Counted from the stretch's first letter, positions 3,351 through 64,000 are shown. The stretch: DNA of 64,000 nucleotides from Blastocystis sp. Blastoise (GCA_039096225.1 JBBPEB010000019.1:62001-126000); one strand, 5' to 3'. Translations and numbers: made by a program. The notes: generated by a model from the sequence alone, not told the origin.

Positions 3351-4801
3351 TTATGCAATCCCATGAATATTAAGTATATATTGAGCTGTAGAGGCGACAA
3401 GAATAGAAGAAGGAGATGAAGAGTCGACAAAAGCACAACAATTGGGTTTATTTCGAAGTTTCACATGAAGTTGTTGGTCATATTTCGTATTTCCAGTATT
3501 TGACGATACAGAGATCTTCATATCATCTCCTGCTCCTATTAATAAATGTGTACCTTCACTATTATATGCAGAAAGAACTTGAGTACAAGCTGCATAATGA
3601 GGTCTAGTTGAGGTATTTACTTCTTGCAAATATTCATTATTATTAAATAATAACTGACGCAATGACCCATCACCACAGGAACAAAAAATATTATTACCTA
3701 TATATAATATTATTATTATATTATTATTTTATTATTGAATACTATAATATAATATTATTGAATACTATACTATATATAATAATAAATAATATATATCATA
3801 ATATACTTCTGTAATCTTTACAGAGACTAGTAACAAAGGGAGGGTTTATATAGGAAGTACCCGGGTCCTGAGAGGGATTGATCGACCATTCATGCAACAC
3901 ATCACCCTCTAAATTCCTATATAAAGATAATATATATCATTATTATTATAAATATAATAAATATAATAAATATAATAAACATAAAAAGTAATAAAAAGTA
4001 ATAAAAATAATAAAAATAATAAAAATAATAAAAATATAAATATATTAAATATAATAAAACAATAAATAAAATAAATATAATAAAAATAATAAAAATAATA
4101 AAATAATAAAACAATAAATAAAAAAAAAAAAATAATAAATATAATAAATTATACCAATTATAAACTTTAAAGTCCATTCCACCACTAATGACACTTACAC
4201 TATATAAACAAATATATATTATTAGTATTCATAAAAATATATTACTTTCTGCCTTCTCTATAAAACATGACACTAGAACATATGTTACTATGCATATCTG
4301 TAACAGTAATCTCATTTTGCTCGGTCCATAAATTATATATGGAAACTGATCCAGAATCATCAGCAGAAGCTAAGTAATGACCATCATCATCAATAACTAT
4401 TTGACTAATATCATCATCATTCTCACTAAAACAATTGGAATATTCCTTTAAACAAACATCATAATTTCTTAAATCGAATTCATAGATGGTTTTTCCTGCA
4501 GCAGCAAATACTTGATGAGATTTAGTAGGATTCGACACAACAGACATTACAGCATCATTAAAAACACCCACAATACAATTTACTGTAGTCTCTGTCTTTA
4601 GATCCCATACACGAATTGTTTTATCTTCACTACCACTTATTGCTCTATCTCCATCACATATAACACATGTAACAGAATCTTGGTGACCTTTCCAATTAGT
4701 AAAATGCATTGTATAGATTGTTCTATTAATAGAATATGTTATATTCTGAAAACAAATACGAAATAATTCTGTTTATTGCCTTTAATTTACGATTTTTCCA
4801 T
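3351..4801 (-). CDS. WD40-repeat protein, WDR53-like, ~5 exons
   Basis: GHQDSVTCV...ISGSEDKTIRVWD and LASADDSGSVSIYNL. Spliced exons give VISGGMDFKVYNW, INPPFVTSL and FCSCGDGSL. A likely short first exon (ATG 4801) splices in frame to the 4709 ORF. Confidence 0.8.
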
Positions 4802-5762
4802 GTTTTTTTAGAAATTCTCTTTTTTAAGAATTTTAATACTGTGAATAACAACTCTTAATAAATATAATTTTAATTAACTCATGGCAGTAAAAATATGAAG
4901 CTAGTCCAAACCAAATTAAAATATAATAAAACAATTATAAAAAATAATTCTTTAATTTGATTTTGTAATAAAAAGCTATTGATAATAATGCAACAAAAAA
5001 ATGATAACAGGGAGAACAAACAACAATGAAAACTGAAAACAAAGTTTAGATAGAAATCACTAAAAAATGTTTAAATAAATAGAGAATTACATCACATTGT
5101 TCTTTTCTTAATAAGCAAATATATACATATATATATTTATAATAATAATAACAATGAGAATGATTAATCTATGCATAAAAACAAAAAACAAATTTCAAAG
5201 AAAAACAAAAACAAATGATAAATTATATTCGTATTGAATTGACTGAAAATAGTAGTAAAAAAAAGTAAAAATGTACATAAATATATAAAAATAAAATAAA
5301 TTAAAATAATTGAATACATATACATAATTACAAGCATATAAAGAAAACATGTAAGAATTTTGAAACATATTTAAAAAACAACTATATATGAATATGCGTT
5401 AGAATATATATATAGATTTTATTTCCAATAAAAACAGAATAATAAACAAATAAAAGAAAACGATAGAGAAAGACTCGAATAAAAGCTAACTATATATATA
5501 AAGATATATATGAATTTGAGTAACTATATAATGAAAAACAAATATATATATAAACAGAAAATGTAATGAATATATATATGAATGAATAATTCATATATAT
5601 ATTAATCCTAATAAAAAATATTTATAAAATAAATGAAAAATGAAATTCACAAAAAAAGAGAGTATCTACCAAGATAATAATAAGATTATATAAATAAATA
5701 TATATTATACAATATTAGTAATATATATATATAAATAATGCATTAGAGACGATTCATGTTAA

Positions 5763-40772: not shown

Positions 40773-53288
<12,516 letters not shown>

Positions 53289-54490
53289 TAATAATATATT
53301 AAATAATAATATTAAATAATAATAATATATTAAATAATAATAATTAAAAAATACCTGACATAATATCTACTCTCTAAAATTTTATACCTTCTCTTTTTTC
53401 AAATAATTCCAATATTTCCACGGGAATACAGTATTCTATTTATTCAAAAAATAATAATTTTATCAATAAAAAAAAAATAAATAAACTATGTATATATATC
53501 TATAAACTATTTTATTTATTTTACAAATTTATTCTGTAATTCTTTTTTTTTTTTATATTTTTCACTTTTTTCTACAAAATTTATTATATATTTATATCTA
53601 TTATTTTATGTATATATAAAAATACATTTAGTCTTATTATTTATTGTTTATTTTATTTTTCTATATATTATGTATTATCAGATCTTTACATTTTACTTAC
53701 AATCTTCAAATTATTATTATATTCTAGATATGTATCTTCTTATATATTACAGTTATTTCTTTTAATTAATATAAGAAAATTGTCCACTTTTTTTAAATCT
53801 ATTTTTTTTATATTTATTAAAATGCTTATTATTGAAGTAGATATCATTTCTATCTTTTATCATTTTTGCTTTCTATTGCTCTATAACTATTTGATCTATT
53901 ATATCATTTTTGTTCATTTCAAACAGACTTTTTTGTTATTAATTATTTGTTCAATAAGAATTTGTACGATATTCTTATAATTGATGTAAAAATATATGGA
54001 CAAACCACATTGATTATACTAGCATTTAATATATTTAATTTTATATTTCACATTGAACAACAATGAGTTTCAATCTAGAATCTATTGTTTATTTATTATT
54101 AGATATGTAGAAATATAATAGTTTAGGATCAATTAATTGCATTCTTATTAAATAATAGCTATAAATGATAAATAAATTATAAAAAATTAAAAAAAAATAG
54201 TACCAATTTATAATCAAGATTATCATTAGAGTAATTACTCGAGATTTACAAAAAAAAACCGTATAAATGTTTTTCCCCAAAAAAGTAATAAACGCTGTTA
54301 TATAAAAATATGTTTTTTAGAAAATCTCTAAGTAAATCTCTATAAGGAATGGAAAAAAAGTGGATTCTGTGTCCACTCTTTTTTAACATTTTCCACCAAA
54401 AAAACTCTGTTTTAGATAATCTCAATTTTAGGTTCAAATATAATATTTAATCATGAATATATTTAAATTTTGAGACTTTTTGAAATGAAC

Positions 54491-55844
54491 TTGGCCAGAC
54501 TAAATTGCGCTATTAACTGTTCTCGGTTTCTGGCGGATACTACTAACCAGAAAGATAACAAAAAAAAGCCAGTGAAAAAATTGGTTTTATCACGATTATA
54601 AAGTAGTATTCTTTTGATCATTTTTCAAAAATAAAAATCGAGGTACAAAAATCGTTTTTTGCTATTTTAAGGGCAAAGACGTTTGAATATAAAAGAAATT
54701 ATATTTTTATTTATACATATATGTTATTTGAATTATAAGAAAAGTGTGAAATATATCATAACATTAAAAACAAAGAGATATTAAGAGAAAGTCAATAATC
54801 ATTAAAATAATAAGAATATAGAGAAAAAAAGTTAATAAACCTGGGAATGCTAAAAAAATTCTTTTTTTTCCATATTATTTAATTCTCTATTTTAGATTAA
54901 TAACAGAAAAAAACTATTTAAATTTAATTAATTCAGATATTATTATATGTATATATTTGTGGAAAAATATCATTTAAAGCTATAAACGTTATTTTCTAAG
55001 AATCAATACAATTATGTTTATAAAATATGACTATTCAAGCATAATTAACAAGATGTGTATTTTTAAAATATTTATTTAAAACAAATTGCAACTAAAAAAC
55101 TATTTTGTGTATGTGAATATAATGTGAATTAATAAATGGCAACATTTACGTGTTTAAATCGTTGTTTAAGAAACACTGAGACATTTCTTAGGAATAAAAC
55201 CGATTTATTTCTCATTTTGAGTATTCAGAAAACACGGACTTTTTAATAAAATATTTTAATATATGTAGTCTTAGTAATAATACTTTGCTGATTATACACG
55301 AATAATGCATTTTATAAACATAATTGTATTGATTCTTAGAAAATAACGTTTATAGCTTTAAATGATATTTTTCCACAAATATATACATATAATAATATCT
55401 GAATTAATTAAATTTAAATAGTTTTTTTCTGTTATTAATCTAAAATAGAGAATTAAATAATATGGAAAAAAAAGAATTTTTTTAGCATTCCCAGGTTTAT
55501 TAACTTTTTTTCTCTATATTCTTATTATTTTAATGATTATAGACTTTTCTTAATATCTCATTTATTTTTAATGTTATGATTCATATCTCACTTTTCTTAT
55601 AATTTAAATAACATATATATATAAATAAAAATATAATTTCTTTTATATTCAAATAATTTTGCCCTTAAAATAGCAAAAAACGTGTTTTTGTACCTCGATT
55701 TTTTGTTTTTAAAAAATTGTCAGAAATAACTACTTTATAATCGTGATAAGATCGATTTTTTCACTGCGTTTTTTTTGTCATTTTCTGGTTTAAAATATCC
55801 GCCAGAAACCGAGAACAGTTAATAGCGCAATTTAGTCTGGCCAA
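54491..55844. mobile_element. Non-autonomous foldback/MITE-like DNA transposon, probably hAT superfamily
   Basis: 536-bp terminal inverted repeats (54491-55026 and 55309-55844, starting TTGGCCAGACTAAATTGCGC) around a 282-bp spacer. Exact 8-bp TSD AAATGAAC at 54483-54490 and 55845-55852. Confidence 0.92.
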
Positions 55845-56191
55845 AAATGAACACAAAAAAATAGTTGTTTTTATGTTCAGTGATTTATTTCTAATTATTA
55901 TTTCTAATTATAAAAAAAAAATTAACTTTCAGCCAATATAAAACAAAAGAAAGAATAATATCATGTATTCATAATAAATATATTAGTAAATAATAATTAA
56001 AAGAAGAAAGAAAAATAAAGAAAAAACGCACTAAAAAACCACCAAAAATATACATAAAAATGGCGCCAAATATCTTATTTCCCCGCATTTATTTTATTAT
56101 TTTGGGGCAAAAAAGAAAGTAATATAGTATTATTAAACTATTTGTTAAATAGACATATAAGCAGTGTGAATAGAGTCGAAAATAACAGAAA

Positions 56192-57513
56192 ATGGCTGTT
56201 AATCATACAAAGAGAAGTATATAAAAATCTATAATAAAATACAGCAAAATAAATAAAATGTTTATATAGAAAGTAACTCGAAGAAAGAAAAGAATAATAA
56301 TACGAGAAATAAAGAGAAAACAAAGGCATCAACAGTACCAAGAAGAAGTGAACGTCTCAATAAAAGAATTGGTAAATTGCCTAGCAACCAAACACAAGAA
56401 GATATCGTATCTACTGAAAATGAGCCTTCAATAGCATCAAAGAAAGAGAAAAAAACAAAAATTACGGTTCAGGATAGATTAAGAATGATGACTGATGATA
56501 GATGCAGTCTATTTGAAGACAGAAATTATTTTGTACAAAGAGATGAAGATTTATATTGCAACATATGCAAGAAGATAGTAGATTATACTAACATCAGCCA
56601 TATATATTCTCATATAAAGAGTAAGAGACATTGTCTTAGAAGAAAGAATAAAGAAGAAACAGCACCTAAAGAAACGTTTGAAGTTGCTGAAAAAAGAAGA
56701 AATAATTTAGAAGTAGATCTATGTCGTGCTATGGTAGCTTCTAATAGATTATTGAAGGCTGTTGATGATGAACCGCTGAAATATTTCTTTTCACAATACT
56801 TGGATAGAAGTATTCCATGCTCAAAAACCCTTAAGGACAAGTATTTACCAATTGTGTATAGCACAGATAAAGAGAAGATAAAAGAAATACTGAAACCTGA
56901 AGGAGAAAGATTAGAATTATATAATAGTAGCAATAATAGTAGTAAGAGAATACAAATTTTTGTTGATTCAACAACGGACATGTGCGGAAGAGAAGTAGTA
57001 GCTATTCTTGCTAAAGTAATATCATCATCTGCAAACGAATATACTGCTTTAGAAGAAATCAATCCAATCTTCTTGCTAGATATAAAAGAAAATCATAATA
57101 TAAATGGAATTAAGTATGCATCGATGATTTATGATGTAATAAGAGATTATGAGATGAAGGATACAAACATAGTTCTATTTACATCAGATAACGCTACTGT
57201 TATGTATAAAACAGCAGAACTTCTATCAATTTCTTTTAGAAACATTAATCATCTTCCTTGTATATGCCATCTGATCAATATTCTAGGTTCAACTATTCAA
57301 GAGAATTTGGAGTCTAGCGATTCATTAATCAGATATATGAATAACTATTTTAGCTTTTCTATATATAAAAAAAACTCGTTAAAAGAATATCTTATAAGTA
57401 AAGGATTTGAAAAGGCTACATACATTCCACAGTATATTGAGACAAGATGGTCATCATTCTATGAATGCCTTGTATATCATAGCACCTATATAGATCAATC
57501 ATTACTATTATAA
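56192..57513 (+). pseudogene. hAT-superfamily transposase, 3'-truncated, with one 5' intron (56217-56269)
   Basis: BED-like finger CNIC...HIKSKRH, DSTTD and SDNA (first two catalytic Asp), CICH (CxxH) and TRWSS. The catalytic Glu and dimerization domain are missing. ATG 56192 splices in frame to the 56377 ORF. Confidence 0.85.
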
Positions 57514-58129
57514 AGCAAATAGGCAAAAAAATTCCCATTGGTCAGTTTTTGGAAAAACCATTTGATTGGCTACTATATACTATAGTTTGTCGCCGCAACT
57601 CCTCTAAACTTACGGGGAGTTAACTTTTGGTTGAAACACAGTTCAATACGATATAACGTGTAGTTTTGCACCGTATATTTGGATAAGCGATATTGTTTAT
57701 AATTAAAAAGTTATTAATAAAAAAACAGAAAACATGATTTTTGAGTCGTTTTTGATTGGCTCTTTGGGGTGACCCCGATAAAAATTGTTGACCAGACAAT
57801 TGAAAAATAAACATGGGGTAAACTTGATTTTTTTCTCAATCCCACAATATACGTTATCCGTGTTTATTCTTTATATTTATCTATTTTTTAATACTTTTTC
57901 ATATTGAACACGTGAGGCCTTAACGGTCAAATTTAGATTCTCAATTTGACATGATATTCTGATTCAGGAGGTCCAAAAACCTAGGTGTAGCGATTTTGAG
58001 CTCCTGAGGACGATTTTTGAGTGATCGATATTTTCTTCGATCTTCTTATAATGGACTAATATTGTAGCATAGTAATCAATAGGTCATCAAACTACTATAG
58101 TTAAAACAGAGTTTTAAAATAACGAGTTT

Positions 58130-59150
58130 AAAAGTGACAATTTTGAAAAATGTGAATTAAGTGGTCTTAGAGTGAGAGATTCAATATTATGACTTTTATT
58201 TAGTAAACTAGACTTATAACTCTATTCTATATTAAAAGGAGAGTCAAAATTATGAAGGTCAAAGTGTATGACCAAATGACAAAATGTGTCTTAAAAAGTA
58301 AAAGGGTTTATATATGTGTTTAGAATCATGTATCAAGTCTATTTTATGAATAAGAGCTTTAAATAAATAGTTTAAGGTTGTCAAATTTAAAAGAATGTGT
58401 AAAACATAGTCTTAAACTATGAATAAAAAATTTAGAGATATTAATTAGTGTACAGCTGTAGTAGCTCTACAACATATCAAAAGTACAGTTAAAATAATTT
58501 TTAAAGAATGGATGTGTGAGGTGTTGTGACTATTATTTAAAATTTATTTTTACTTCAGTTTGAGCAAAATCGTGTTTTTGGAACACTGTAGAAAAATTAA
58601 CTTAAAAAATCAACTCTAAGGGTCTTAATTTTTAGAAAATGTAAAAATGAGTGACTTAGAGGACGAGATTCAAAATAAGAGCTTTTAGTCATTAAACTAG
58701 AGTGTATAACCTATATTATATTAAAAGGAGGGACAAAAATATTTTGATCAAAGTGTATGACCAAATGGTAAAGTGTCTTTAAAAAGTCTAAAGTGTTGAC
58801 TAATGTGTTCATAGGTCTAAATCAAGTTTAATTTTAAAATATTAGCTTTATATAATAAGTTAAAGGTTGTCTATTTGTCAAAATGTATTAAGTAGTGTCT
58901 TAAACAAAGAGATTCAAGAAGTTGACTTTCATTTTATAGATAGCATGTGTATATAAACACTTTATGAAAAGTACTTTAGAAAATATTGTGGATGAGTGTT
59001 TTGCCAAATGGTAAAGTTGTATCAAGAGTTGATTGTTTCCATTCCTTTTTGTATAAATCAATGTTTCGTGTTTACTCTATAAAAATAAATTATTAATACT
59101 GAGTTTAACGTTTTAAAGTCGACATGTGTGTTTGGTTTGTTTACTTTTAA
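58130..59150. repeat. Diverged tandem repeat with ~245-bp period and ~490-bp dimer (block 1)
   Basis: AAAGTGTATGACCAAATG at 58261 and 58751; GAGATTCAA at ~58175, ~58665 and ~58909. Confidence 0.8.
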
Positions 59151-59377
59151 TTATTAAAATTGAGTTTAAATTGATAAATTATGTCAGACACGTCTATATT
59201 GATTGATTCAAACAGTTTAGAGATAATTTATTTGTTTGAGTATAAATAGATTTGTTCTCATTGTGACTGTTGTTAAGAAGAGGAAGTCTAAAAAAGCTAT
59301 AAAAAGTTAGATATATATGTTTAAGATCAAAATTGAAAAGTATAAATTAAAATGGTTTAAAATAAATTTAAAAAAGA

Positions 59378-59432
<55 letters not shown>

Positions 59433-59465
59433 GTGAATAAAATATTAAAAAATAAAAAAATAACA

Positions 59466-59531
59466 CTTTATGTCAGGAATTGAACCTGAAAACAATCTAT
59501 ATGATTGTTTCTCTCCTTCTAGAGCATAAAA
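59466..59531 (-). ncRNA. tRNA-like cloverleaf, copy 1 (not a canonical tRNA)
   Basis: TTTTATG-CTCT(AGAAGG)AGAG-AAACAATC(ATATA)GATTGTTT-TCAGG(TTCAATT)CCTGA-CATAAAG; canonical T-arm/B-box. Confidence 0.7.
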
Positions 59532-60110
59532 GGAGTTTATAAATAATAATAATAATCAAATATATATATTTATATATATATAATAAGAAGGAAATGAAGT
59601 GGAAGGATGAGGAAGAAGGAAGTAGGAAGGATTAGGAAGAAGAAGTAAGAATAAGGAAGGATGAGGAAGAAGGATGAGAAAGAAGGAAGTAAGAAGAAGT
59701 AAGAATAAGGAAGGATGAGGAAGAAGGAAGAATCCAGAATGAAGAAGAAGTAAGTAAGAAGAATCAAAGATGAGGAAGAAGGAAGAAGGAAGTAGGAAGT
59801 AGGAAGTAGGAAGCATGAATGAAGAATGAAATAGGAAGAAGGAAGCATGAATGGAGAAGGAAATAGGAAGAAGGAAGAAGGAATGAAGAAGGAAATAGGA
59901 AGTAGAAAGAATGAGAAAGAAGTAAGAAGGAAGAAGAAAGAAGAAAAAAAAGAATAAGAAGATTTTAAACCTATATAAAATAGAAAACATATAAAAAAGA
60001 TAATATAAATAATTAATAAATACATAAATAAATATTAAAAATAAATAAATAAACATATAAAATAAATAAATAATAATAAATAAATAAACATATAAATATA
60101 ATAAATATAA

Positions 60111-60153
<43 letters not shown>

Positions 60154-60570
60154 AATAAATAAATAAATAAATAAATAAAATAAATTTAATAAATAAAATA
60201 TAAATAAATAAAGAAACAATAAATAACAAAAATAATAAATAAAATATAAATATATACATATAAATCAACCTGAAACCACAGATTTAAAAGAAAGACATGA
60301 AAAAACGAAGAGTATAACACACACATCAGTTACATTTTCTTCCCTATAGAATAAAAATAACTAATAATCTATTGATTAATTATATATAAAGAAAATATAA
60401 ACCAAAAAGATAATAAAAAAAGAAACAATTAAAGAAACAAATGAATTAAAAATGAAATATTATAAAAAATATATATATTTATATACCTGACACTAAATAA
60501 ACCATTTCATTTAACCAGGACCACTTCAAGAACCACTAACCATGACAACCAAGGCAAATACAAGAGAATC
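59532..60570 (-). ncRNA. Putative spliced non-coding transcript (exons 60570-60487, 60343-60270, 59970 onward)
   Basis: GC-richer islands bounded by TATAG| acceptors and CAG|GT donors like those in real genes of this window; no convincing spliced ORF. Confidence 0.45.
59585..59960 (+). repeat. Polypurine (GAA/GGAA-rich) low-complexity tract; C/U-rich on the minus strand
   Basis: Directly visible; mostly A/G, with AGGAAGAAGG-type subunits. Confidence 0.9.
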
Positions 60571-60925
60571 CTATAAAGAAGTGTATTATTTTAAATAAAT
60601 AAATTAGTATATAAATAGATAAATATAATACTAAGTTAAATAACTTTAAATAAATAAATAAAACACACTAAGTCAATCAATACAATAAAATATTTAAAAA
60701 AGAGTAAAGAACTATGTTTTTTGGGTACCCAAAATGATTTTAAACCAGAATGACCCAATTATTACTTTTGTAATAAAATCAATGAAAAATTAAGGCAATT
60801 TTTGATTTCTATTATGTTTTAAGAAGCATATTTTAAAAATAGACCCTATTATATTTATTAATTCAAATGAAATAGGATTGTTAAATACATAATCTAATAC
60901 TCATTTATATATTAAATTATTAATT

Positions 60926-62280
60926 ATGATGTCTAAGAACAACAAAATTGCTTCAAGGTGGAGGTCTGGAAATAAAAAATAATTTATATTTCAAAGAAAA
61001 TCAGGTATATTGTATCTATTTGTTATTAGTATTCATATTTAGGTTCTTCTACTCAATAGAATCCAGTTATGTATGTTCTTAGTCTTGGTGGTACTTGCTC
61101 TGATGGTCTTAAAGGTATATATTTTCCATTTCTTTTTTTATTAATTATTTATTATATTATTTTAGGTTGTTCTATGTTATTTGTATCATACAGAGGTGGT
61201 GGTGTTGCCTGTTATGCTAACTGTGAAGGTATGTTGTCAATGATTTGTTTTTATTTTTTTAACTTTTCTTTATATATAGGTTCTTCTGTTATTGTAAGTG
61301 ATTCCAATAGTGATATCGGTGTTGATGTAGGTTCTTCTTGCTTTATAGATGGTATGTTACCAATCATTTTTTTTTTTTTTTTATATTTTATTATTATTTT
61401 TTTATTATTTCTATATATATAGGTTCTTCAGTTGTTGTACATGTTAACAGTGATGTTGATAATAGATGTCTGTGTGGTGTTGAAGGTATGTTGTCATTCA
61501 TTTATTTTTCTTTTTTTACTTTTATATATATAGGTTTGTTTTATTGATGTAAATGTTGCTATGGATGTTGTTGGTGATCAGGTAGACTGCTCATATGATA
61601 TTAAAGGTATATATATATTGTCATTCATTTATTATTATTTTTTTTTATTTATTATTTGTCTATTACTGTTTCTTTATAGGTTATTCTACTGTTGTGGTTG
61701 TAGTTGCTGAACGTATTAATGATGAAGGTATGTCTACTTTTTAAATTTAATTTAGTTTATTATTATTTTTATCTTATATAGGTCGTTCTTTTCTTATGGA
61801 GTCTTGGATTAATGGTAATAATGATACAGGTATATTCTTATTTCTTCCTTTCTTTTTTTTTTTGATTTATTAATTATCTTTTCATTATATATAGGTTCTT
61901 CAAGTCAGTTAAGATATCATTGTGTTTCCTCTGTTCCTTCTTTAGAAGGTATATATATATATTTATTGTTTATATATATTTTATCATTTATTATATTATA
62001 TATAGGTGTCTTTTCTAATAGGGGATCTTATCACCCTAATGTTAGCTTTCATTTTAATAATAAAAATGTATCTAAAGGTATATATATATATATATATATA
62101 TAACAAATATTTATAATATTTCTTTTAATATATCTATATCTTATATCTATATAGTGATGGTGTGAATAGTTTTTAATACTGAAGGTATATATATATATGT
62201 TAGATATATTTATTATACTATCTCTTATTATATATATATATATCTTTTATCTATATAGGTTCTCTTAGTGTTATGGTTAT
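60926..62280 (+). pseudogene. Micro-exon gene or pseudogene: 12 exons, internal exons 30-73 nt, phase-1 symmetric
   Basis: Eleven GTAT...TAG introns. Internal exons are 72, 63, 72, 63, 73, 48, 48, 54, 72 and 30 nt and encode G/S/V/C/D-rich modules. In-frame stops in exons 1, 2 and 11, and a 1-nt excess in exon 6. Confidence 0.6.
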
Positions 62281-62445
62281 GTTTAGATTTTTTTTTTTTA
62301 GTTCTTTTTCTTTTTCTTTTGCTTATTATTATTATTATTTTTCACATTTAATAGCTTTCTATTATCTGCTTTCTTTATATTATTTATTTATTTATGCTGT
62401 TGTTATCGTTTTAGCTATTCTATATTTAAATGTTTTCTTTTGTTC

Positions 62446-62483
<38 letters not shown>

Positions 62484-62719
62484 TTAAATTGTGTCGACTA
62501 TTAAGATAATTCTTCAATTACTTAATATATTAAATAGTGTCAAGTTTTTAAATGTTTGGATTCAATTTAATTTAAAATATCTATTGTCCACTTTTAACTT
62601 TATATAGTATAACTGATTTAATACTGTCAATGATTGAGATATTTAAGTTTTGTTTTTCTCCACTAATTCATCTTGCATATATATATTATTGTGTAAATAT
62701 AAAGTCATAAAAGTAAGTT

Positions 62720-63450
62720 TAAGGTTGTAAAATTTAAAAAATTGTAAAAAGGGGTTCTTAAACTAAGAGATTCGAAATTCTAAAAAATGATTTAATATAC
62801 ACTAAGCTAAATTCTACAACATATTAAAAATTAAGAGAATTTCATTTTTGAAAAGTTAATTAACAATGTGTTTGAGTTGTCTAGAAATTTTAAAGAGTTA
62901 GCTTCTTTGTTTAAAATTGTGTTTTTATTATACTATGAAAATTTTGACTTTTAAAAACAAGTTTAAAGGGGTTTATTTTTTTAAATGTAGAAATAAGTTA
63001 CTCAACGGACGAGATTCAATATAAAACATTTTATTTATCAAACTATGAACTATAGTCTAAATTATATTAAAAGAAGTGACAAAAATACTCTTGAAAAAGT
63101 GTATGACCAAATGTAAAATGTTTATAAAGAGTGTTAAAATGGTAACTAATGTATTGATAGAGTTATGTTGAGTATAGTGTTTAAATATTAGAGTTTTAAA
63201 TTAACTATAAGTGTGTCAATTTTTCAAAATGTATTAAAAAGCGTCATGAGGTCAGAGATTCAAGACATTAAACTATAATTAATAAATAATACAATGAGAT
63301 CTATACTGTGTGAAAGTTATGTCTAAAACGATTTTGATACAGTGGATATCGAAATGGTAAAGTCTCTCTAAAAGCGATATTGTTGATACTGTTATGTATA
63401 AAAATTCTATTTAGATTGATTTCATTAATATTAATTCTAAAACTATGTGT
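62720..63450. repeat. Second block of the ~245/490-bp repeat, offset ~4.35 kb
   Basis: GAGATTC at ~62767, ~63011 and ~63255; AAAGTGTATGACCAAATG at 63096. Confidence 0.8.
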
Positions 63451-63782
63451 TTAAGTCGTTAATGTGAAAATAAATGTTGATATTGTTGTGTTAAATTTGT
63501 TTTAGTTTTATGAAATGGTTAAAAATAGTTTAAACTACTTTATTCTAATCTATTTAAATTAATTTAATAAAATAAAAATATTTTTCAATACTTCACATTG
63601 TGACCCATTTCGAGATTTATTAGCTTTAGAAATTCCATAATGATTAAAAAAGTAACTAAACTATTTATAAATACAAAATATATTTAAAAAAAAATAAATA
63701 ACAAATATAATGAATCAAACAAGAATTTATATATTTTTTTTTGTTTTTAGTTTTTCAGATATTATTTAAATAATCTATTTAA

Positions 63783-63852
63783 TTCTTATATCAGGAATTG
63801 AACCTGATAACAATCAATAAATGATTGTTACTCTCCATATAGAGTATAAGAA
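63783..63852 (-). ncRNA. tRNA-like cloverleaf, copy 2
   Basis: TTCTTATA-CTCT(ATATGG)AGAG-TAACAATCA(TTTAT)TGATTGTTA-TCAGG(TTCAATT)CCTGA-TATAAGAA; stems covary with copy 1. Confidence 0.7.
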
Positions 63853-64000
63853 GTTTTATTAAAATAATGTATAATATATATAATATATTATATATAATAA
63901 GTAACATCTAATAGATAATATTTAATAAATAATACATATTATATAATATATAATATATAATATATAATATATAATATATTATAGATAATAAGGAAAGAAA

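Follow-up and report, generated by a model that had tools for sequence, protein, structure and literature searches.

We have found that positions 58375-64000 of a 64,000-nt stretch of the Blastocystis sp. Blastoise genome (the window) are the interior of a 6.6-kb Helitron without a transposase of its own, and a single 6,583-bp non-autonomous Helitron, i.e. a rolling-circle transposon, very probably spans 57499 to a point 81 bases beyond the window. A preliminary description had seen in this segment a tandemly arrayed, bidirectionally transcribed module that matched no recognised family, and had put it forward as a candidate for an undescribed system. The element is a Helitron, and the exon chain is not an independent system; it represents a degenerate 5' portion of the transposase gene of the Helitron. 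The suggestion that a rolling-circle element might carry the module was borne out by the tested termini and an empty site. What had appeared to be an unknown genetic system is resolved as a known kind of mobile element with unusual conserved parts, which removes a false lead, and an abundant, recently active repeat family can now be annotated with exact boundaries. The features of the element and of the interrupted host gene are collected in Table 1.

The ends were defined by comparison with an empty paralogous site, an uninterrupted copy of the host gene at C34 (L022) with flanks that are 100% identical over 797 bases. All 6,583 bp are missing from this site as one block, and comparison of the empty with the occupied sites (n = 2 occupied) shows that the element went in between an A and a T without duplicating the target. 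The same TC start was observed in a second copy, in an autonomous copy and in short copies. The 3' terminus is CTAG, which conforms to CTRR and lies 78-81 bases past the window (L001:78-81), and CTAG is followed by T at all 18 of the 18 3' ends in the loci fetched. A GC-rich hairpin 35-71 bases past the window (L001:35-71; fold of -19 kcal/mol, z-score -5.1) stops approximately 10 nt short of this end, and in other lineages its stem is kept while the inner sequence differs. The second purine tract that had been thought to begin in the last bases of the window amounts to only 11 purines, after which come this hairpin and the CTAG, ending at L001:81. A second copy and a nested inverted copy repeat the same ends and the A/T insertion seen at the empty site, the nested copy sitting between A and T in the (ATATAAT)n tract of the next copy. 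By eye, the 5' leader contains ATTGG motifs and a short GC-rich stem. The sole Pfam match of the host ORF is to DUF659 (weak, below the curated cut-off), and a Pfam search with the C-terminal exon of the host gene returned nothing.

Table 1. Features of the Helitron and its insertion site, in window coordinates (L001 positions are counted past the window)
Feature	Position	Strand	Remarks
Host ORF cut by the Helitron; two-copy gene	56377-57498	+	ORF listing; frame resumes at L001:82
Helitron 5' end and 5' leader	57499-58112	+	TC at 57499-57500; A|TC boundary from empty-site comparison
Block 1, four diverged ~245-bp tandem units	58113-59089	+	starts 58113, 58358, 58602, 58845
Cloverleaf type A, internal copy	59468-59539	-	fold z-score -3.5
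Putative last minus-strand exon	59541-59970	-	acceptor motif 59970/59971, also in autonomous relative
(ATAA)n tract read as intron	59971-60257	-	donor and acceptor motifs kept in autonomous relative
Putative exon B	60258-60344	-	splice motifs conserved
Putative intron between exons A and B	60345-60486	-	splice motifs conserved
Putative exon A	60487-60570	-	splice motifs conserved
Conserved central region	60571-60928	.	between minus-strand exon A and plus-strand start codon 60929
Micro-exon chain, ~12 exons, all phase 1	60929-62330	+	decayed 5' part of RepHel gene
Micro-exons 1-4	60929-61004, 61043-61114, 61166-61228, 61280-61351	+	
Micro-exons 5-8	61423-61485, 61534-61606, 61680-61727, 61782-61829	+	
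Micro-exons 9-12	61895-61948, 62006-62077, 62155-62184, 62259 onward	+	
Poly-T run and conserved block	62433-62702	+	lies in long intron of autonomous relative
Block 2, three ~245-bp units	62703-63435	+	starts 62703, 62948, 63191
Cloverleaf type B, near 3' end	63786-63857	-	full cloverleaf fold, z-score -3.9
(ATATAAT)n tract running to 3' end	63870-64000	+	hairpin and CTAG just beyond window

The window copy is non-autonomous because it has no ORF of RepHel size and because its exon chain contains stops and a frameshift. No ORF of at least 150 aa was found in 57499-64000 except for low-complexity frames in the purine tract, and the frame of the chain, in which single micro-exons encode 16-25 aa, is interrupted by two stop codons (60980-60982 and 61057-61059) and by a sixth exon of 73 nt. 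The chain is a pseudogene in this copy; its frame is open in L006 and L016 and, with every exon in phase 1, in autonomous relatives. That the chain is spliced follows from four copies (L007, L024, L023 and L032) from which the introns at 61115-61165 and 61229-61279 are precisely absent, in three different combinations and with breakpoints exactly at the predicted splice sites; these losses show that mRNA is reverse-transcribed and its sequence returned to a DNA transposon. In an autonomous relative, the acceptor motif and phase of the large exon leading into RepHel are those of the chain and, judging by phase and motif, the chain appears to continue by splicing into the RepHel exons of autonomous relatives; no copy was found in which the chain is fused directly to the RepHel exon. 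The transposase gene of this family would carry a fast-evolving micro-exon arm.

Autonomous relatives are active, as shown by at least 51 Helitron_like_N (RepHel) loci in the genome, most of which have open frames of 1,400-1,680 aa; one RepHel ORF matched the Pfam families Helitron_like_N (1.8e-56) and PIF1 (2.1e-64). One autonomous copy presents the same order as the window (leader, repeats, cloverleaf, purine tract, central region, exon chain) and has the 5' 4.5 kb in common with the window element, with two fewer 245-bp units. When 59780-59815 was masked in the comparison, the leader was found to be 88-98% identical between subfamilies, compared with only 55-77% for the exon chains of the same subfamilies. 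Another RepHel element (C4 locus, ORF of ~1,631 aa) has the last 220 bases and the 3' hairpin in common with the window element, and the hairpin and the 5' 4.5 kb of the window element match two different autonomous lineages. A simple pattern scan found no micro-exon chain upstream of the ~1,631-aa RepHel at C4. Short relatives of 3,163 bp lie head to tail, joined as CTAG-TAA-TC. These 3.16-kb elements, the smallest members, consist solely of the leader, repeats, cloverleaf and 3' end, a content which suggests that cis-acting parts exist in addition to the classical Helitron ends.

The cloverleaf had been called a tRNA mimic, a designation that stands for its fold, which is real and covarying, but not for its identity, as it escapes ARAGORN and Rfam and has an unusable anticodon loop. 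Among 10 cloverleaf variants, 92.5% of cells pair, versus 37-53% when the partners are slid, and both sides have changed in 7 of the 24 pairs, a number that only 2 of 500 shuffles attained; the secondary structure is maintained by selection. ARAGORN identified 0 tRNA genes in the cloverleaf, and Rfam gave no match at the gathering score and no tRNA match at E values up to 10. The anticodon stem is 7 bp long, there is no variable loop (the anticodon and T stems are no more than 1 nt apart), and the anticodon loops, as read from the sequence, vary between copies and types and do not have the usual U33 or purine-37 pattern. The cloverleaf covaries, but it is not a tRNA. Type B is also present in the short 3.16-kb relatives. 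Inspection by eye showed the type B cloverleaves to be without a T-run immediately downstream.

The order reported earlier for the next part of the element, namely the polypurine tract, minus-strand exon-like blocks, central region and plus-strand micro-exon chain, was found to be correct, with the (ATAA)n tract next to the polypurine tract. The putative last minus-strand exon is C/U-rich as RNA (it corresponds to the plus-strand polypurine tract at 59585-59960) and ends at the cloverleaf. The minus-strand splice-site motifs persist across subfamilies, and among 22 distinct copies they show either no variation or conservation of at least 90%; loss of a minus-strand intron was looked for in approximately 35 copies, and none was seen. 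Exon A has a 28-codon frame that is open in 8 of 11 variants, and the ORF of exon B (~24 codons) has no in-frame join with it; the putative unit is treated as non-coding or as coding at the micropeptide level. Several blocks of 7-14 nt in the central region are invariant in the 22 distinct copies, and this region, a putative bidirectional promoter, may also include a first minus-strand exon. The bidirectional transcription claimed in the preliminary description is upheld on the plus strand by the precise intron losses, whereas minus-strand transcription is predicted from the conserved splice motifs.

Tentatively, the conserved non-coding parts could make up an undescribed regulatory or cis apparatus of Helitrons. 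An antisense spliced RNA would arise from a promoter common with the transposase gene and have the C/U-rich exon as its last, and a processing signal shaped like a tRNA would release or stabilise it; or else the cloverleaf would serve as an element for Pol III/TFIIIC. For rolling-circle transposition, the 245-bp repeats would provide the iterated binding sites required. It is possible, if doubtful, that the repeats, cloverleaf and antisense unit are instead neutral passengers or debris, their conservation being due to the youth of the copies or to recombination of the 5' part among subfamilies. Many copies are indeed nearly identical, recombination could explain why subfamilies resemble one another much more closely in the leader and repeats than elsewhere, and the T-run missing directly downstream of the type B cloverleaves would fit as well; against this, the cloverleaf stems still pair despite the two-sided changes, no parts other than the leader, the repeats, the cloverleaf and the 3' end are kept in the 3.16-kb relatives, and conservation of the minus-strand splice motifs extends across the 22 distinct copies.

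The 4.3-kb offset is a segmental duplication within the element, by which the 245-bp repeats and the cloverleaf are present twice. The repetition of 58375-59590 at 62723-64000 was confirmed in the form of diverged direct copies at 58109-59590 and 62716-63870 (~70% identity over ~550 nt), and the offsets previously estimated at ~4345 in the repeats and ~4318 at the cloverleaf were measured as 4346 (repeat family D5) and 4318 (family D18, in which the cloverleaf arm at 59468-59501 recurs at 63786-63819 with 91% identity); a further family, D11, has a spacing of 243/489. The block 1 units are 51-69% identical to one another, with conserved cores in common, and a degenerate fifth stretch continues to about 59330. 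The block 2 units correspond in order to units 2-4 of block 1 (identities of 0.56, 0.71 and 0.60). Homology to the autonomous relative stops at about 62690-62716 and the remainder resembles the short relatives, which, together with the match of the 5' part and the 3' hairpin to different autonomous lineages, could suggest two adjoining or nested elements, a 3'-truncated autonomous and a 5'-truncated short Helitron, that form no single mobile unit. This is highly improbable, as the empty site lacks the entire 6,583 bp as one block, the composite of both parts with the same two ends recurs at at least seven loci (99.7-100% identity), and the junction, represented by the stretch 62540-62900 at 40 loci with 72-100% identity, is common to subfamilies down to 72% identity. 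The element may be chimeric in origin, but it transposes now as one.

Copies of this single Helitron are abundant and dispersed. The first 926 bases of 58375-64000 matched at least 40 loci at 88-100% identity (of 182 first-look candidates), at least seven of them being 100% identical over those bases, and whole-length copies are 99.7-99.8% identical. This genome-wide check, in which the copies fell on at least 15 contigs, revealed no tandem host module. Nor is there a tandem 4.3-kb array: downstream lie the Helitron end, host sequence and then a new 6.58-kb copy. A next full unit does exist beyond 64 kb, starting ~6,837 bp after the first and behind 254 bp of host sequence, as a separate insertion and not at a 4.3-kb period. 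The genome is AT-rich (33 Mb, 22% GC) with (AAT)n runs. A host-encoded, immobile tandem 4.3-kb module with its own bidirectional genes, which the related blocks 4.3 kb apart and the further full unit downstream might suggest, has a negligible probability. It is refuted by the existence of an empty site and by identical copies at dispersed loci, the Helitron 3' end lying within ~220 bases of the second block and being followed by host sequence, and the neighbouring 6.58-kb units, each bounded by TC...CTAG, standing 6.84 kb apart.

We propose that the window element would be mobilised in trans by the RepHel of autonomous relatives in the same genome, which presumably recognises the common 5' leader and 3' hairpin-CTAG end, with entry at A^T sites by rolling-circle transposition. 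The interior would have been inherited from an 11.4-kb autonomous element with the ancestral order of 5' leader, 245-bp repeat array, antisense cloverleaf, antisense spliced unit, central divergent promoter and a RepHel gene whose first ~12 exons were small and in phase 1. In the window lineage the RepHel body would have been lost. Its place would have been taken by the repeat/cloverleaf/3'-end portion from a short relative, or else this portion would have been duplicated inside the element; either event would account for the second block of repeats and cloverleaf and for the apparent period of 4.3 kb. An autonomous and a short element may have fused to give the two-block form, or the short element may have arisen from that form by deletion.

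In the literature searched, nothing was found that ties Helitrons to Blastocystis or to a tRNA-like module, and the word Helitron is absent from the tortoise-gut Blastocystis genome paper (PMC12129017). The cloverleaf resembles tRNA genes and the heads of tRNA-derived SINEs in its four arms, its T arm with GGTTCAATTCC (B-box-like) and its 7-bp acceptor stem; it differs from them in being missed by ARAGORN and Rfam and in its 7-bp anticodon stem and missing variable loop. In layout only, a non-decoding cloverleaf directly 3' of the last, C/U-rich exon of an apparently non-coding unit recalls MALAT1/MEN-beta with mascRNA. The latter, carried by a long RNA, is a tRNA-like signal for 3'-end processing. 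The host here is a protist transposon rather than a vertebrate lncRNA, and the cloverleaf also occurs in short relatives that have no antisense exons. The chain shares with the micro-exon genes (MEGs) of schistosomes its short symmetric exons in series, any one of which can be skipped with the frame kept; unlike those genes for secreted proteins, to which it has no sequence relationship, it is the N-terminal arm of a transposase, and in the window it is a pseudogene.

The closest known systems are the canonical Helitrons (Helitron1 type), which comprise plant and animal Helitrons, the bat Helibat/Helraiser family and their non-autonomous derivatives. The Blastocystis family shares with them the 5'-TC, the 3'-CTAG, a GC-rich hairpin ~10 nt from the 3' end and A/T insertion without target duplication, as well as the lack of terminal inverted repeats, autonomous relatives that encode RepHel (Rep plus Pif1-like helicase) and are outnumbered by deletion or chimeric derivatives, and head-to-tail arrays. 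It differs from them in its highly conserved leader (88-98%), its 245-bp repeat array and antisense covarying cloverleaf, its putative antisense spliced unit, and the roughly twelve phase-1 micro-exons with which its RepHel gene appears to begin.

The interval 58375-64000, which the preliminary description had read as a tandem, divergently transcribed cassette of ~4.3 kb and as a candidate for an undescribed system, lies within a transposable element. Copies fetched from the same genome align to the window without a break over ~57498-64000 with 99.7-99.8% identity, so 58375-64000 is internal to a longer, dispersed repeat. This repeat interrupts a host ORF (56377-57513), an uninterrupted second copy of which is present on contig C34, with flanks that are 100% identical over 797 bases. 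Element boundaries were set by comparing the occupied ORF with this empty paralog, which placed the start at the TC at 57499 and the end at the CTAG at position 81 of L001, a locus whose positions continue past the window end. The element is thereby 6,583 bp long and was inserted between A and T with no target duplication. The same host ORF was hit by a second copy 254 bases further on, again between A and T, and a third copy is nested, inverted, between A and T in the (ATATAAT)n tract of the second. The GC-rich 3' hairpin (-19 kcal/mol, z-score -5.1) stops ~10 nt short of the terminus, and in the fetched loci 18 of 18 3' ends carry CTAG with a T directly after it. The tandem system was thus not borne out, as the element is a dispersed Helitron with TC...CTAG ends of its own; a side remark in the same description that a rolling-circle element may be involved was right, and is now established by the Helitron ends and the empty site.

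Copy searches covered the window's own genome (33.34 Mb in 34 contigs). The genome-wide count called for in the preliminary description came to at least 40 full-length matches of 58375-59300 with 88-100% identity, among 182 first-look candidates, and at least seven of the matches listed are 100% identical and spread over several contigs. The cloverleaf stretch gave at least 40 matches among 199 candidates.

GC content is 19-30% over the entire window. Within 54000-64000, a repeat finder identified a 222-nt family at 58166, 58655 and 63001 (spacings of 489 and 4346), a 33-nt core at 58263, 58752, 58995, 63098 and 63341 (spacings of 489, 243, 4103 and 243) and a 34-nt stretch at 59468 with a second copy at 63786 (91% identity, offset 4318). 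Alignment resolved the repeats into two blocks of ~245-nt units, among which identity is 51-71%. Units 2-4 of block 1 are the counterparts of the block 2 units, in the same order, so the arrangement is a block duplication and not two independent arrays. The offsets originally reported for the repeat family and the cloverleaf agree with these values, and the reported order of parts within the cassette was also correct, with a purine tract, an (ATAA)n tract and a poly-T run all detected. The last bases of the window were mistaken for the start of a second purine tract; the sequence runs on into the GC-rich hairpin and CTAG.

Positions and conservation of features of the Helitron (window coordinates)
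Feature	Position	Strand	Observation	Basis
Leader	57499-58250		83-98% identity	Three subfamilies
Block 1, four ~245-nt units	58113, 58358, 58602, 58845			Unit alignment
Putative acceptor	59970	-		Splice motif
Putative exon B	60258-60344	-		Flanking splice motifs
Putative exon A	60487-60570	-		Flanking splice motifs
Intron	61115-61165	+	Lost in L007, L024, L032; present in L023	Copy comparison
Intron	61229-61279	+	Lost in L023, L032; present in L007, L024	Copy comparison
Block 2, three ~245-nt units	62703, 62948, 63191			Unit alignment
Retained repeats and cloverleaf			78-96% identity	Three subfamilies
Exon chain, aligned bins		+	49-77% identity	Window's copy vs autonomous-type copy

Helitron_like_N gave at least 51 matches in the genome, most of them inside open frames of 1,400-1,680 aa. 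One ORF for the Helitron transposase (RepHel) matches Helitron_like_N (1.8e-56) and PIF1 (2.1e-64) and also carries a Pif1 2B domain. The autonomous element around it occupies ~11.4 kb on the minus strand of contig C1 (140.6-152 kb), has the same 5' start as the window's element and finishes in hairpin-CTAG. From 5' to 3', it contains a leader, 245-bp repeats, an antisense cloverleaf, a purine tract, (ATAA)n, a conserved central region and a micro-exon chain, seven parts whose order is identical in the window's element; its 245-bp array is two units smaller. Past the chain is a ~1.4-kb stretch with ~100-bp tandem repeats, after which an acceptor with the form and phase of those in the chain marks the start of a long exon, rich in asparagine, that continues via short introns into the RepHel ORF. 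Approximately seven of the ~100-bp repeats lie at G000:C1 ~146,700-147,400 (minus strand; 4650-5350 of auto.fa, the autonomous copy), in a putative long intron that separates the micro-exon chain from the large RepHel-leading exon. The 5' 4.5 kb of the window's family matches a lineage with RepHel ORFs of 1,559-1,571 aa, but a different lineage, with a RepHel of ~1,631 aa, has the identical hairpin; either may supply the RepHel that mobilises the family. This second autonomous lineage (L017/L018, G000:C4:1522000-1533830) matches the window's 3' end in its last 220 bases and hairpin. Its upstream 5 kb does not resemble the window's element at the DNA level, nor did a simple pattern scan pick up a micro-exon chain upstream of its RepHel.

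In both autonomous-type copies examined (L006 and L016), an open frame runs from a start codon across at least 10 exons of the plus-strand micro-exon chain, all of them phase 1. In the window's copy, this frame is interrupted by stops at 60980-60982 and 61057-61059 and broken by the sixth exon, which is 73 nt long. Being open in autonomous-type copies, broken in the window and placed before the RepHel-leading exon, the chain is, to judge from its sequence, the degenerate 5' part of a transposase gene. Two of its introns are absent, singly or together, from four copies, in each case exactly from GT through AG. Loss this exact is a textbook sign that a gene has recombined with the reverse transcript of a spliced mRNA, and these losses are therefore indirect evidence that introns 61115-61165 and 61229-61279 are spliced in vivo. 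The 30-nt eleventh micro-exon and parts of both flanking introns are missing in L010 and L011 (~92% identical copies; compare window 62128-62195), a deletion that is imprecise, unlike the exact intron losses.

On the minus strand, the donor and acceptor motifs of exon A, exon B and 59970 are invariant or almost so in 22 distinct copies, from which we infer minus-strand transcription. Intron loss was not seen among the copies compared, and open frames are only short and cannot be joined in frame. Exon B holds a ~24-codon hydrophobic, cysteine-containing small ORF that ends at the 3' edge of the exon and is open in most subfamilies (L006, L016, L028, L038 and L042 compared), although not in the window's copy, where it is interrupted. 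It may encode a micropeptide or have arisen by chance.

Against shuffled sequence, both copies of the cloverleaf fold better, with a z-score of -3.5 for type A (internal) and -3.9 for type B (near the 3' end). Covariation was assessed in 10 distinct variants from window, autonomous, short and other copies. Standard pairs occupied 92.5% of cells, compared with 37-53% when partners were slid, and changes on both sides were present in 7 of 24 pairs, a value matched by 2 of 500 shuffles. The cloverleaf has an invariant T arm and no variable loop, and the anticodon loops of the two types are unlike one another. The cloverleaf was recognised neither by ARAGORN nor by Rfam, even at E-values up to 10. 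It is a selected tRNA-shaped element and not a tRNA. One variant (L007:1740-1815, minus strand) shares the T arm and also has a D arm and a good 7-bp acceptor stem, but its anticodon arm is replaced by a (TA)n run.

Homology with the autonomous element ends at ~62690-62716. From block 2 onwards, through the second cloverleaf and (ATATAAT)n to the hairpin, the sequence resembles short relatives of 3,163 bp. These contain nothing beyond leader, repeats, a single type B cloverleaf, AT repeat and 3' end, and are found head to tail with CTAG-TAA-TC joints. At least three of them form such an array at G000:C4:1533830-1542000 (L018:1830-10000), the first directly 3' of the end of a RepHel-bearing element; the array looks like the outcome of rolling-circle read-through or tandem duplication. 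The junction at 62540-62900 recurs at at least 40 loci with 72-100% identity, and a recurrence this wide, at identities this low, marks the two-block design as old and successful. An autonomous element may have been fused by deletion to a downstream short element, or a two-block ancestor may have given rise to the short elements through recombination between its blocks.

The highly conserved parts of the element are exactly those kept in its shortest relatives. It is hypothesized that leader, repeats, cloverleaf and 3' hairpin matter in cis, for RepHel recognition, expression or chromatin state, and that the micro-exon arm would be fast-evolving and not needed in trans-mobilised copies. Recombination that swaps 5' parts between subfamilies could yield the same conservation pattern, an explanation that we regard as possible but rather doubtful.

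Elsewhere in the window, a foldback-like structure with nested inverted repeats is present at 54491-55844; its 239-nt inner arms (54788-55026 and 55309-55547) are 100% complementary and its outer arms 87-90%. An unbroken (AAT)162 run at 50000-50487, within long open frames, exemplifies the extreme low-complexity tracts of this genome, coding or non-coding.

The word Helitron is absent from PMC12129017, on tortoise Blastocystis isolates, and a literature search outside of which lay most subscription journals and Repbase returned no description of a Helitron in Blastocystis or of a tRNA-like module in Helitrons, which is absence of evidence only. Each defining feature of Helitrons that could be tested is present in the element, which is a non-autonomous Helitron from a family with unusual accessory parts.
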